A DNA stretch of 64,000 nt from Rebecca billardiae RCC1528. Taxonomy: Eukaryota > Protista > Haptophyta. Below are positions 39,678-55,493 of this stretch, piece by piece. The DNA lies in the NCBI GenBank assembly GCA_965240325.2, contig OZ251254.1, forward strand, positions 1 to 64,000. The letters are read 5' to 3'. Position 1 is the stretch's first letter. Every line of letters begins with the position of its first letter. Under the pieces are notes generated by a model that had not been told where the DNA came from, made no database searches, and saw only the letters and a list, made by a program, of their open reading frames with translations. Both the position numbers and the translations under genes were made by a program.

Positions 39678-41859
39678 TCAGCACAGGCCAAGGATGCCGC
39701 ACCCCACCCTGTAGAGGGAGGCGAGCACCTGCGGGCGCACACGCCGCGGCGGAGGGTGTGGGCGGCACGGGCAAGCGTCATGGTGCGCACGCCGCGGCGC
39801 AGGCGGCGCTGCTGACGGCCCTGCTCGTCGGCACTTGGCGGGCATCATCCTCGCGAGGATGATGCCGGCCCGGCGCGCGCGCTGCTCGCGGAGCAGCAGC
39901 GCAGAGACTCGCTGCGGAGCGCATGGCAGGCGGCAGGCGCGGGGGCGCGCGGCGGCGCGCGGCGGCGGCGCGCACCGTGAAGAAGCACACCGACTCGCAG
40001 GCATATGGCGGCGGCGGCGACGGTGGCGGCGGCGGAGGCGGCGCCGGTGGCGGCGATGGCGGAGGGCTCGGCGGCGGCGTGGGCGGCGGCGGGCTCGGCG
40101 GCGGGCTGGGCGGTGGTGAGGGCGGCGGGGACGGCGGCGGCAGTGGCTGGAGTGGCGGCGGCGGGCTTGGCGGCGGCGACGGCGGCGGCGGCGGGCTGGG
40201 CGGCGGGAAGGGCTTCGGGGGCGATGGCGGCGAGCTGGGCGGCGGTGGGCTCCACGGCGGGCTCGGTGGGGGCGACCGCGGCGGCGGGCTCGGCGGCGGG
40301 CTCGGCGGCGGCGGCGGGCTCGGCGGCGGGCTCGGCGACGCCGGCGGCGGCGGCGAGCTCGGTGGGTTCGGCGGCGGGCTCGGCGGGCTCGGCGGCGGCG
40401 ACACGCTGGCCTGCCCGAAGCACAGATCCTCGCCCGAGAGGCACTTGCTGAGGGCGCCGTCGCCCAGGTCGATGGGCCGCAGCTGGTCGCCGAGCACGCT
40501 CTGCAGTTCGCTGCCAATGCGGGACGTTTTTTCGCCCTGGCCGAGGAGCGGATAATAGCCGACGCACGCGAAGGTGCAGTCGTCGAGCAGCACGCAGTTC
40601 GTCTCCTCGCCCATGTCGAACTTGCAGACCGTCCGGTTGCGGTTCTCCGGGTCGGACGGGTGCCTGCCCAGGTAGATGGGCTTGAGGCGGTCGCCCATCT
40701 CCCCCGGGTTCTCGCCGCGGTCCACTGTGTCGCCGTTCATGAGCAGGCTGTAGGGGTTGTCGCCCCAGCACACGAAGGAGCCGTCGTCGCGCAGCACGCA
40801 CGTCGTGCCGCCGGAGGGCGACGCGGCTCTCACCGCGACGGCCGTCCTGTTCGTGCCCAGGTCGACGAAGGGCAGCTTGTCGCCCATCAGGTTGGGCAGC
40901 ACGTCGTCCTTCCCGTCGCCGCGATTGAGATCGTCCTCGTACCCGAGCGCGCCGTCGGCGTTGCCGCCCCAGCACTTGAGACCGCCGTTGGCGAAGATCG
41001 CGCAGATGTGGTCCTGGGTGAGCTCCACCGCCACCACCGGCTCGGTGGTCCCGAGGTTGACGGCCGGGAGCTTGTCGCCCATGAGATGGCAGTCCGGGCA
41101 TGCCGACTCAAAGCCCCTCCCCCTGTCGTGTGTGTCGTCGTAGCCGAGCAAGCCGCCCGGGTTGTCGCCCCAGCACTTGAGGTCATCGTTGTCGAGGATG
41201 GCGCAGAACCCGTCGTAGCCGGCGAAGATGTCCACTGCGTACCGCCCCGCCCCAAAGTCGATGGGCGTCAGGCTGTCGCCCATCTCGCCCGGGTCGTCGC
41301 CGACGCTCTGCGTGCTTGAGGAGCTCAGGCCCAGGCCGAGCCACTGCGCGTGGCCGAAGCACCGGGTGGTGGTGTCGTTGAGGAGGAGGCACCTGCTCAA
41401 TTCGCCGACGGCCGCCTTCACGATCGCCGTGCCGGACGGCAGCTCGATGGCCGGCAGCTTGTCGCCCATCGTGCCACTCACGTCGCCTCGGTTGACGACG
41501 TCGCCGGTCCCGAGACGGCCGTATTGCCCCTTGCCCCAGCACTTGAAGTCGCCGTTGTCGAGCAGCGCGCACGCGCTGTCCTCCGTCACCGAGTAGATCC
41601 GCCGCACCGTGCGCCCCGTGCCCAGGTCGATCGCCGTCAGGTTGTTGCCCATCTCGCCGGGGTCGTCGCCGCGGTTCACTTCGTCCCCGTGGCCGTGCCG
41701 TCCGGAGCCGCCTTTCCCCCAGCACTTGGTCGCGCCCGTGTCGAGGATGGCGCACCCGGGGCCGCCGCAGCCGCCCATGGCGAAGTCGAAGCACGCGGCC
41801 GGGACTGCGAGGCACGCGGCGAGCGCCAGGAAGGCGGTCAACGACGAGGGGGGTGGCAT
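39678..41859 (-). CDS. Secreted RCC1/BLIP-II 7-repeat beta-propeller with SPPP stalk, paralogue 1; exons 41859-39976, 39728-39678
   Basis: Signal peptide; 7 repeats of C-A/V-x-L-D..K-C-W-G..G-x-L-G...MGDxLxxVDLG; (SPPP)n; spliced tail FFT/VLASLYRVGCGILGLC* conserved with paralogue 2. Confidence 0.9.
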
Positions 41860-42286
41860 CACTTCGTCTGTACTGGACGCGCAGCACCGTGGCCCTCGCT
41901 AGTCGCTGCAACTACTGAGCGGCGCCTAGGCGCGGGCACCTCCGATGAACGTAGCATACGCCAAAATTAACGTCGAGCACGAAAACTTGGTCACGACCAC
42001 GACTCTGCCCGGGAAGCACCATATTTATGGGGGTACTGCGTGCTACTATTTACTACTGCGCCAGCAGCAGCAGGGCTGCAGGCGCGCTGCGGCGGATTCA
42101 TCCAACGCACGCGCGGTAGTCTTATGATACGTCAATCTCGCCTGCCTGAGCTGTGTGCGTCTCTTATTCTTAGTAAACTGTACCAATCTCGTTCGCATGA
42201 GCTCGGTGTGCGTCTCCTATTATTATCAAACTACGGATTTGCATGCGCCCGAACGACATATCGTCGTCAGTCCGGCAGGTGCGCGG

Positions 42287-52780: not shown

Positions 52781-53488
52781 GACGCGGGCGTCGGCTCACA
52801 GGCTGAGGGACCGCGAGCGACAGTCCGGTGCGCGGATTCCGGCGATCGAGTTCAGAAGGCCGCGCCAAATCTTGCGTCGCGTGCGATGGCGCTTCCCGCC
52901 CGCGAGACGCCTCGTGATGAGGGCTTTCTCGCACCGAGCCCGACGCGCGACGGTGGATCGCGCGAGGCGGTCATCGTGCGCAGCGCATGATGCTATGGCC
53001 GGTGCGAGCTTTCGACGTGCACGTCGGGCGAGGATCGCCTCAGGTCTCACGATCGTGTCGACGCGCCGAGCGTACCGCTCCAAACGCGTCGATTTAGCCC
53101 CCGTTCGACCTGCACGCGAGACGACGAGGGCAGCAATCGCGAATCGGGCGAAAACACCGTTCGGGAATCCCCGCGCGATGTCCGCGCCGGCGTTGGATTT
53201 GGCGCGCGCGGCCCACGCGCTCCGCGCCACCCGTCTGTTGTTTTCGGCCGAGCGTCCCCAGTGGGAGCTGCGAGGGCGCCCGGTAGTGAGCGAAGCGATT
53301 TTCTTTTCTCTGCGAGGCGATTTTATTTTTTATTTTCCTTTTTCTTATCTTTTTCCCGGGCACTACAAGGGGCGGACCTACGGCCCGCCATTAAGGCGAT
53401 CGAGAAAGTTCTCATCAACAGAAGTTGGCGGGCGCGGGTTATTTGCGGCGTTCACGCTGCGTAGTGCGCGTGCCGCCCACGTACGACG

Positions 53489-55493
53489 ATGCTGATGTCC
53501 GCCCGACCGCCCTCGTCGTCGTTTACCGCCTTCCTGCTGGCGATGGCCGCTTGCCTCGCGGTCCCGGCCGCGTGCTTCGAGTTCGTCATAGGCGGCGAAG
53601 ACGGCCCCGCGTGCGCCATCCTCGACACCAGCGAGACCAAGTGCTGGGGCAGCGGCAGCCGCGGACGGCACGGCCACGGGGACGAAGTGGCCCGCGGCGA
53701 GGTGCCCGGCCAGATGGGCAACAACCTGACGGCGATCGACCTGGGCTCGGGGCGCACGGTGCGGCGGATCTACTCGACGATGGAAAGCGGCGCCTGCGCG
53801 CTGCTCGACAACGACGACTTCAAGTGCTGGGGCTATGGGAGAGACGGCCGCCTCGGGACCGGCGACGAGGTCGACAGAGGCGACGTGAATGGCACGATGG
53901 GCGACAAGCTGCCGGCCATCGAGCTGCCGTCCGGCACGGCGATCGTGAAGGCGGCCGTCGGCGAAGACGTCAGGTGCCTCCTCCTCGACGACACCACCAC
54001 CAGGTGCTTCGGCAACGGGCAGCGGCTCGGCCTCGGCCTGAGCTCCACAAGCACGCAGAGCGTCGGCGACGGCCCTGGTGAGATGGGCGACAACCTGACG
54101 GCCATCGACTTTGGGGCGGGGCGATACGCAGTGGACATCTTCGCCGGCACGGACGGGCTCTGCGCCATCCTCGACAACGATGACCTCAAGTGCTGGGGCG
54201 ACAACCCGACCGGCTTGCTCGGCTACGACGACACACACGACAGAGGGAAGGGCTTTGAGTCGGCATGCCCCGACTGCCATCTCATGGGCGACAAGCTCCC
54301 GGCCGTCAACCTCGGGACCGGCCGGACGGCGAAGACGGTGGTGCTCTCCCAGGTGCACGCCTGCGCGATCCTCGACAACGACGCGCTCAAGTGCTGGGGC
54401 GGCAACGGCCAAGGCGAGCTCGGGTACGAGGATGAGCTCAATCGCGGCGACGGGAAGGACGACGTGCTGCCCAACCTGATGGGCGACAAGCTGCCCGAGG
54501 TCAACCTAGGCACTGGCAGGACGGCCGTCGCAATGAGCCTCGGGGCGCCTGCCTCTGGCACGACGTGCGTGCTGCGCGACGACGGCTCCTACGTGTGCTG
54601 GGGAGACAATCAAGGCAGCATGCTCATGAGTGGTGACAAAGTGGACCACGGCAGGAACCAGGGGGAGATGGGCGACGGCCTTAAGCCCATCTACCTGGGC
54701 AGGCACCCGTCCGACCCGGAGAACCGCAACCGGACGGTCTGCAAGTTCGCGCTGAGCGAGGAGGCGAACTGCGTGCTCCTCGACGACTGCACCTTCGCGT
54801 GCGTCGGCAGCTGGCAGCACGCCGCCCAGGGTGACGGCCAGGACCGCGGCGCAGCGCCAGACGAGGTCGGCGACGGGCTGCTGCCCATCGACCTGGGCGA
54901 CGGCGCCCTCAGCAAGTGCCAGTCGGGTACGGAGACGTGCTTCCTGGAGGCCGCGTCGCCACCACCGAGCCCGCCGGCCCCGCCGCCGAGCCCGCCGCCA
55001 CCGCAGCCGCCGCCGCCGCCGCCGAGCCCGCCGCCGAGCCCGCCTCCAACGCCGCCGCCGCAGCCGCCGCCGAGCCCGCCGCCGAGCCCGCCCCCATCGC
55101 CGCCTCCGCCGCCGCCACCGTCGCCGCCGCCGCCATATGTCTGCGGGTCGATGTGCTTCTTCACGGTGCGCGCCGCCGCCGCGCGCCGCCGCGCGCCCTC
55201 GACCTCGTGCCTGCCACCTGCGCCATGGTCTCTGCAACGAGTGGCACTGGCTATCTGCGCTGCTGCTGCTCCGCGAGCTGCGCGCGCGCCGTGCCTGCGC
55301 TCCGGCTGCTCGCGATGAAGCACCGCGCCATCAAATATTCCGAGCACGACCGTCATCAGCAGCGCGCCTGCACCGCGGCGGCGTGCGCCGTCATGACGCA
55401 CGATTGTGCTGCCTACACACCCCGCGGCGTGTGCGCCCGCAGGTGCTCGCCTCCCTCTACAGGGCGGGGTGCGGCATTCTTGGCCTGTGCTGA
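53489..55493 (+). CDS. Secreted RCC1/BLIP-II 7-repeat beta-propeller with SPPP stalk, paralogue 2; exons 53489-55165, 55443-55493
   Basis: Collinear with paralogue 1, same intron position, tail VLASLYRAGCGILGLC*. Confidence 0.9.

Follow-up and report, generated by a model that had tools for sequence, protein, structure and literature searches.

Why two paralogous genes near one chromosome end of the haptophyte Rebecca billardiae RCC1528 should have conserved the scaffold of a seven-bladed propeller but changed, in blade after blade, the same two loops is the question raised by the locus described here. The locus lies in a window of 64,000 nucleotides, the whole stretch of DNA that was analysed (positions 1 to 64,000, forward strand, of contig OZ251254.1 in assembly GCA_965240325.2). 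Its two genes, called A and B below, had been predicted from the letters to encode a signal peptide, seven RCC1-like blades, a stalk and a short Cys-containing tail and to share one intron, and both were found at the predicted positions with a signal-peptide-like start, seven blades, stalk, Cys tail and common putative intron. We favour, with moderate confidence, the view that A and B are paralogues for cell-surface glycoproteins and that the ligand bound outside the cell differs between them, specificity being set by the variable face of the propeller. The scaffold is under purifying selection and one face changes at a much faster rate; positive selection, chiefly on the loop that follows the WG motif of each blade, is likely but not established. 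The parts of the two genes are as follows.

41859-39678, minus strand: gene A, whole gene
39976..41859, minus strand: gene A exon 1, 628 codons (open reading frame, translation)
41859-41794, minus strand: gene A residues 1-22, signal-peptide-like (read by eye)
41793-40402, minus strand: gene A residues 23-486, propeller (Pfam RCC1_2, 71.8 bits; blade motifs)
40401-40006, minus strand: gene A residues 487-618, Pro/Ser stalk (composition)
40005-39976, minus strand: gene A tail, first 10 residues, YACESVCFFT
39729..39975, minus strand: gene A putative intron, 247 nt, GT..AG (splice sites shared with gene B, from which it differs by out-of-frame insertions and deletions)
39678..39728, minus strand: gene A exon 2, VLASLYRVGCGILGLC plus stop codon, putative hydrophobic anchor (96% identical to gene B exon 2)
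53489-55493, plus strand: gene B, whole gene
53489..55165, plus strand: gene B exon 1, 559 codons (open reading frame; AlphaFold2 model of residues 24-490)
53489-53572, plus strand: gene B residues 1-28, signal-peptide-like (read by eye)
53573-54955, plus strand: gene B residues 29-489, propeller
54956-55135, plus strand: gene B residues 490-549, Pro/Ser stalk (composition)
55136-55165, plus strand: gene B tail, first 10 residues, YVCGSMCFFT
55166..55442, plus strand: gene B putative intron, 277 nt, GT..AG (conserved splice sites)
55443..55493, plus strand: gene B exon 2, VLASLYRAGCGILGLC plus stop codon

The two proteins are 77% identical over 485 residues, and the differences follow the blade register. 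When each blade is split into ten register classes, anchored on its first Cys and on the MGD motif, the A-B loop (L1, the five residues before the first Cys) differs at 20 of 40 positions and the C-D loop (L2, the four residues after WG) at 18 of 28. Together these top loops differ at 38 of 68 positions (56%), compared with 68 of 386 (18%) elsewhere (Fisher p = 2e-10). Of the 145 positions in the other loops (B-C hairpin, xxRGDxxGE and TGRT), 34 differ (p = 5e-6 against the top loops); strand S2 differs at 3 of 35 positions and strand S3 at 0 of 28. At position +16 from the first Cys, A and B differ in every one of the seven blades; at +15, -5 and +24 they differ in five blades each and at +13 in four. 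Top-loop substitutions are also more radical (mean BLOSUM62 score -0.87 versus -0.26) and richer in aromatics (14% versus 4%). All 14 loop pairs that had been quoted in the original prediction, and the identical framework stretches, are present in the alignment as written.

Where these loops lie on the propeller can be read from a model and from homology. For gene B residues 24-490, AlphaFold2 with 72 aligned sequences predicts a seven-bladed canonical RCC1 propeller, with a predicted local distance difference test score (pLDDT) of 90.1 and a predicted template modelling score (pTM) of 0.90. DSSP finds three long strands and a short fourth bridge per blade in the order S1, L1, S2, tight hairpin, S3, L2, and since this is the strand order of an antiparallel meander, L1 and L2 should share one side, opposite to that of the hairpin. 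In a HMMER alignment to UVR8, L1 coincides with GWRHT and L2 with WG-W-G-(D/R). The dimer interface of UVR8 comprises W233, W285 and W337 of the GWRHT motifs together with W94 of a post-WG loop, the WG tryptophans themselves being in the strands (PMC4501546). Because L1 and L2 align with these interface registers, the variable residues would lie on the face that serves for protein contacts in UVR8. Judged by strand topology and UVR8 homology, both variable loops are thus predicted to lie on one face, in keeping with the earlier proposal of a variable binding face and not with a scatter of variable sites over both.

The rates of change were estimated by pairwise likelihood under the Goldman-Yang (GY94) codon model, with F3x4 codon frequencies and a silent rate common to all site classes. 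The ratio of nonsynonymous to synonymous rates (omega, or dN/dS) is 1.83 for the top loops, 0.44 for the other loops and 0.23 for the core. Outside the top loops it is 0.30 and below 1 (p = 7e-7), and the other loops taken by themselves also depart from 1 (p = 0.001). Top loops and other loops differ strongly (likelihood-ratio statistic 37, p = 1e-9), the top loops exceed 1 at p = 0.021, and dropping the poorly aligned blade 7 gives a top-loop omega of 2.0 (p = 0.018). For L2 alone, omega is 3.09 (p = 0.003). The Nei-Gojobori method returns a dN/dS of 2.35 for L1 and L2 together and 1.0 for the rest; the latter value is set aside as an artefact, since a G+C content of 92% at third codon positions leads to an undercount of silent change, while F3x4 gives 0.30 with a dS matching the intron. 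Indeed, the model dS of 0.31 matches the distance between the putative introns (0.25-0.33), which supports the codon model. The claim of diversifying loops therefore stands as far as the contrast with other exposed residues is concerned: the loop dN/dS is neither at or below 1 nor no higher than that of the other loops (1.83 against 0.44). That it truly exceeds 1 has modest evidence, p being about 0.02 with classes chosen after the fact.

It is possible, although we consider it rather less probable than a change of ligand, that the top loops are simply the least constrained part of the protein and drift at the neutral rate, in which case the two copies would have the same function or a function that is independent of this face. 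Several points weigh in this direction and against the view that we favour. No positions of the family, bacterial and algal members taken together, are more variable than the top loops (entropy 2.6-2.9 bits among 70 homologues), as lack of constraint would give. The raw nonsynonymous difference of the loops (0.33) is not significantly above the difference of the core of the intron (0.27), and L1 alone has an omega of 1.47 that is not above 1 (p = 0.20). Moreover, 20 of the 38 differing top-loop codons differ at two or three bases, a situation in which single-step codon models inflate omega, and omega is biased upward because the loop classes were defined with the differences already in view. 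With only two sequences neither a site model nor a branch test is possible, and the mapping to a face, like the disulfide geometry discussed below, rests on topology and homology. However, neutral drift alone does not readily account for the omega of about 3.1 on the post-WG loop (p = 0.003), for a register position that differs in seven of seven blades or for the radical and aromatic-rich nature of the top-loop substitutions. It also does not account for the finding that, when only positions that vary widely across the family are compared, differences between A and B remain commoner in the top loops than elsewhere (24 of 38 versus 24 of 65, p = 0.014). Complete neutrality of 68 residues beside a core with an omega of 0.23 would be unusual.

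The extent of the homology between the copies bears on another explanation. The DNA of A and B forms an inverted repeat that is 88% identical across the 1298-nt propeller part, and the blastn homology spans 41856-39677 in A and 53507-55494 in B, ending a few bases from the start codon and from the stop codon. Outside it, blastn shows no homology between the flanks, the presumed untranslated regions among them. It is unusual for a plain duplication that an intron should remain 73-79% identical when homology stops at the boundaries of the coding sequence; gene conversion limited to the gene body between the inverted copies is one possibility that would explain it, but it is not needed to explain the rates. 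Conversion could be given a larger part, if old duplicates had been kept alike by it and the pattern of differences marked short tracts that escaped rather than selection on the protein. The abrupt ends of the homology would fit, as would the inverted orientation, which permits conversion without deletion, and the long stretches without any difference. Yet such tracts would not follow a 61-residue blade register, and the synonymous difference is similar in the loops and in the rest (0.16 and 0.105, from few counts). The agreement of the model dS with the intron distance shows that one divergence time fits, and the identical stretches are no longer than the low density of synonymous change predicts (about two changes expected per 25 codons). 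We therefore regard a conversion mosaic as improbable.

A more radical doubt concerns the genes themselves. Long reading frames arise easily in DNA of 74% G+C, and many overlapping frames of 100 to over 400 codons exist in other frames of this region, so that one or both copies might be non-functional and decaying. This we consider the least probable of the explanations weighed here. The core omega of 0.23 and the value of 0.30 outside the top loops (p = 7e-7) are well below 1, all Cys residues but one are conserved, the frame is kept across a large difference in stalk length, splice sites and stop codon are conserved, and the AlphaFold2 model is a confident one. The long open reading frames that underlie the gene models extend over 39778-41862 (minus strand) and 53489-55318 (plus strand), and beyond the stalk they run on into a basic, poorly conserved continuation. 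It is this continuation that was read as the intron, and in the predicted structure of both genes it behaves as one. Its two copies are 73-79% identical, at a Jukes-Cantor distance of 0.25 (0.33 without the conserved ends), and are separated by eight insertions or deletions, six of which have lengths not divisible by three. Both copies carry TTCACG/GTGCGCGCC as donor and CCCGCAG/GTGCTC as acceptor, and the 51 nt past the acceptor are 96% identical and encode VLASLYR(V/A)GCGILGLC followed by a common TGA, 1-2 nt beyond which homology ends. The same 9-nt donor is found in the Rab GTPase gene that lies between A and B: there (minus strand, about 49462) an exon ending in QIWDT stops at GTGCGCGCC, and the next exon begins with AGQESF after AACAG, at the universally conserved WDT/AGQE junction. 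Because it closes the Rab exon at this junction, GTGCGCGCC appears to be a working donor in this genome, of which GC-rich GTGCGC donors may be typical.

The predicted proteins have the parts expected of a molecule held at the cell surface. At both N-termini a hydrophobic stretch of 16-17 residues ends in AVPAA/C and looks, on inspection, like a signal peptide. A plastid destination was also considered, but the sequence as read spoke against it, as the closing strand of the propeller starts right after the predicted cleavage site and leaves no transit-peptide-like stretch. Each head contains seven blades of 58-68 residues, recognised by the motif C-x9-C-[WFV]-G; a blade starts with C-[ALV]-[IL]-[LFR]-x5-C-[WFV]-G and continues with (G/L)xLG, RGD-like and MGDxLPxVDLG motifs. 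Blades 1, 2, 4, 5 and 6 have the motif as C-x9-C-W-G, blade 3 has C-F-G and blade 7 C-V-G, a pattern that is identical in A and B. Pfam recognises RCC1_2 (PF13540; 71.8 and 53.2 bits, cut-off 22) and RCC1 (PF00415; 22.7 and 25.2 bits, cut-off 21.7), while the whole-domain model WD40_RLD scores 90 and 85 bits, under its cut-off of 150; beside these RCC1-type repeats, no further Pfam domain was found in either protein. The heads contain 21-22 Cys, all but one conserved between A and B, and four N-x-S/T sequons each.

The stalk has 132 residues in A (95 Pro and 26 Ser) and 60 in B (47 Pro and 9 Ser), arranged in SPPP, SPPPP and PPPSPP units, that is, in Ser-Pro(3-5) runs of the extensin-like or hydroxyproline-rich glycoprotein type. 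The length difference between A and B is exactly 69 codons and the frame is kept into the conserved PPPPY-x-C-x-S-x-CFFT, which argues that the stalk is translated, unlike the intron with its out-of-frame insertions and deletions. The tail of 10 + 16 = 26 residues, with a mean hydropathy of 1.0-1.7, four Cys and nothing beyond, is compatible with a single membrane helix or with a glycosylphosphatidylinositol (GPI) signal.

The original prediction had likened the heads to BLIP-II, in which one face of a propeller binds protein. The name RCC1-like is right, but BLIP-II-like holds only at the level of the superfold, because structure comparison (Foldseek was also run) puts UVR8 first, with a Z score of 41 and a root-mean-square deviation of 2.4 Å over 360 residues, and BLIP-II at Z 20-21 with no detectable sequence match. 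In between are the structures of HERC2, RPGR and RCC1 (Z 30-35, RCC1 itself Z 30-32) and the ectodomains of CR4 and ACR4 (Z 21.5). The profile of the 72-sequence family finds UVR8 in the PDB at E = 2e-40, followed by RCC1, HERC2 and ACR4 (E = 2e-10), whereas no BLIP-II chain in the PDB was matched by single sequence or by the profile at E up to 10. UVR8, RCC1 and the RCC1-like domain (RLD) of HERC2 are the best structural and profile matches and share the blade register of A and B, the variable loops of which correspond to the GWRHT and post-WG loops of the UVR8 interaction face. They are, however, cytosolic or nuclear, about 22% identical to A and B, and lack the Cys pair per blade, the signal peptide, the stalk and the anchor.

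A secreted inhibitor or decoy of the BLIP-II kind, blocking a bacterial or viral enzyme, is hence very unlikely. In its favour, BLIP-II (Streptomyces exfoliatus, PDB 1JTD) is itself a secreted protein with a seven-bladed propeller of the RCC1 superfold, one face of which binds the target protein. It is, however, a protein of about 28 kDa without stalk or anchor, and its blades are three-stranded and of about 40 residues (PMC6121496), unlike the 58-68-residue blades of A and B, which are nearest to RCC1 and UVR8. In addition to the missing sequence match, the stalk and the hydrophobic tail argue for a tethered protein and not for a free one.

The plant receptor kinase CRINKLY4 (CR4/ACR4; PDB 7A0J and 7A0K) resembles A and B in that its ectodomain is an RCC1-related propeller of seven blades, with C-x(9-10)-C-W-G in every blade, and in that the blades jointly form a surface on which a ligand is presumed to bind. 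Its blades have about 39 residues, compared with 58-68 in A and B, and its propeller is followed by a Cys-rich domain of the TNFR-like type, then by a membrane helix and a kinase, where A and B have a Pro/Ser stalk and 26 hydrophobic residues. To our knowledge, extracellular RCC1-type propellers have been described in detail only for CRINKLY4, the ligand of which is still unknown, and for BLIP-II. Searching the literature for secreted RCC1 proteins in haptophytes or protists gave no relevant result. In crystal structures of CRINKLY4, each blade has one disulfide, formed by the C(X~10)CWG motif (PMC4617170; bioRxiv 10.1101/2020.08.10.245050), a feature that has been called unique to CRINKLY4 (bioRxiv 10.1101/2020.08.10.245050). 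In the 72 bacterial and algal homologues of A and B, however, the C-x9-C-W-G Cys pair is invariant in most blades, which suggests that disulfides in each blade may be widespread in bacterial and algal secreted propellers. The C-x9-CWG blade is common to a large set of bacterial secreted proteins, although disulfides in each blade have been held to be unique to CRINKLY4, and at this locus the CRINKLY4-type blade motif appears in a different layout, namely signal peptide, propeller, hydroxyproline-type stalk and minimal anchor, in a haptophyte-like alga.

The closest sequences are 40-45% identical over the whole head and mostly bacterial, from secreted multidomain proteins of Bdellovibrio, Myxococcota, Chloroflexota, Actinomycetota and Planctomycetota, with two prasinophyte 'EGF-like' proteins in addition. 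Public proteins contain neither an identical protein nor a close relative, the best match of a whole-propeller search being 45% identical. A search restricted to blades 6-7 gave one match at 37% identity and no counterpart of the blade-6 insert RHPSDPENRNRTVCKF. The bacterial 'RCC1 domain-containing' proteins and the 'EGF-like domain-containing' proteins of Pycnococcus and Pseudoscourfieldia share with A and B a repeat of about 61 residues (consensus HTCALLDNxxVKCWGxNxxGQLGxGDxxxRGDxxGEMGDxLPxVDLGTGRTA), but they combine it with PKD, fn3, Big, discoidin or EGF domains or second propellers and have no Pro/Ser stalk with a short anchor. Horizontal transfer from bacteria was considered and rejected: in the tree the A/B pair stands alone on a long branch (length 1.27), neither with the prasinophyte sequences nor inside a bacterial clade, and no donor can be named.

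How, then, might the two proteins work? The reading that we favour, different ligands for the two copies, would run as follows. A cleavable signal peptide would route the protein into the secretory pathway, where the C-x9-C-W-G pairs of its seven-bladed RCC1-like head would probably form one disulfide per blade, as in the CRINKLY4 ectodomains. The head would be raised off the membrane by its stalk, a rigid (Ser-Pro3-5)n rod like those of hydroxyproline-rich glycoproteins, and the 26-residue hydrophobic, Cys-rich C-terminus, split by the one intron, would anchor the protein as a single helix or as a GPI-attachment signal. The scaffold would be held by purifying selection, while the A-B loops and above all the C-D loops would have changed at or above the neutral rate. 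Since the A-B and C-D loops of all blades would make up the one face that RCC1-type propellers use for partner binding, the two copies would bind different extracellular ligands by it. Secretion, disulfides, a glycosylated stalk, the mode of anchoring and ligand binding are all inferred; for an extracellular character speak the conserved Cys pairs with their CRINKLY4 counterpart, the PKD, fn3, Big and discoidin domains of the bacterial homologues, the four sequons per head and the in-frame difference in stalk length.

Of the proposed role in cell-surface recognition, the secreted, anchored and stalked RCC1-like architecture and the variation on one face have held up, but not the idea of a transposon-flanked family: tblastn of the 64-kb window detected no copies beyond these two, and public proteins contain no close relative. 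The ligands that had been suggested (a virus, prey, a mate or a bacterial protein) are pure conjecture. Perhaps A and B represent, with their short stalks and simple anchor, the smallest version of a system of extracellular recognition that extends across the genome in pavlovophytes, in which RCC1 heads with blade-periodic hypervariable loops are carried on Ser-Pro rods; we hold this to be doubtful, although not far-fetched. If it were true, the RCC1 propeller, and not leucine-rich repeats or immunoglobulin domains, would be the variable module of self/non-self or pathogen sensing in these algae, a recognition system on a fold not so far known in that role. The pair as such offers a natural experiment, with one scaffold and two different binding faces.

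Genes A and B stand head to head (divergent) and 11.6 kb apart, with the following between them.

41860..53488: spacer between the pair, with a palindrome and four ordinary genes, outside the duplicated unit (Pfam, repeats, unrelated flanks)
42299-43189: 890-nt palindrome between gene A and the EEP-family gene, near-perfect, arms 87-97% complementary
about 43813-45300, minus strand: EEP-family gene (Pfam)
47116-48129, minus strand: TLC-domain gene (Pfam)
about 48452-49677, minus strand: Rab GTPase gene, spliced (Pfam)
about 50153-50963, plus strand: UXT/prefoldin gene (Pfam)

A gene array is not supported, the two copies being separated by these four ordinary genes. The palindrome, which has no protein match, looks like a foldback element or a hairpin-forming spacer. 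Next to gene A there is also a short repeat, found at these places.

39402..39447, plus strand: 46-nt repeat, copy 3' of gene A
42138-42183: 46-nt repeat, identical direct copy 5' of gene A
20435-20482: third copy of the 46-nt repeat, 19 kb distant; a partial copy is at 39236-39274

This 46-nt element could be the end of a transposon or a shared regulatory or terminator element. The description of the pair as flanked by transposable elements goes too far, as only the 46-nt repeat and the 890-nt palindrome adjoin gene A and nothing repeated stands beside gene B.

The label subtelomeric is fair in a loose sense. The window opens with the following tract.

1 to ~1270: (CCCTAA)n tract of ~1.27 kb at the window start, with two short satellites next to it

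These are the letters of the vertebrate-type telomere, and because ~1.27 kb of them stand there, the window start is taken as a chromosome end, from which the gene pair is 38-54 kb distant. A satellite of about 20 nt (AATGTACA-type) leads from the telomere tract to about 1375, and some 13 copies of a 19-nt unit (GGTAAGGGTTAGGGCGCAG) close the region 1-1640, with telomere-like units inside in the opposite orientation. The G+C content is 64-84% across the whole window; that of the sole published pavlovophyte genome is 73% (PMC8379373). Upstream of both start codons, at a distance of ~130-150 nt (about 42004-42013, minus strand, and about 53360, plus strand), stands the 10-nt palindrome-like TTCCCGGGCA, the sharing of which in otherwise unrelated flanks may be chance. 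Just 3' of gene B, amid 70% G+C, lies a long (TA)n / (TATATA) microsatellite at 56200-56330.

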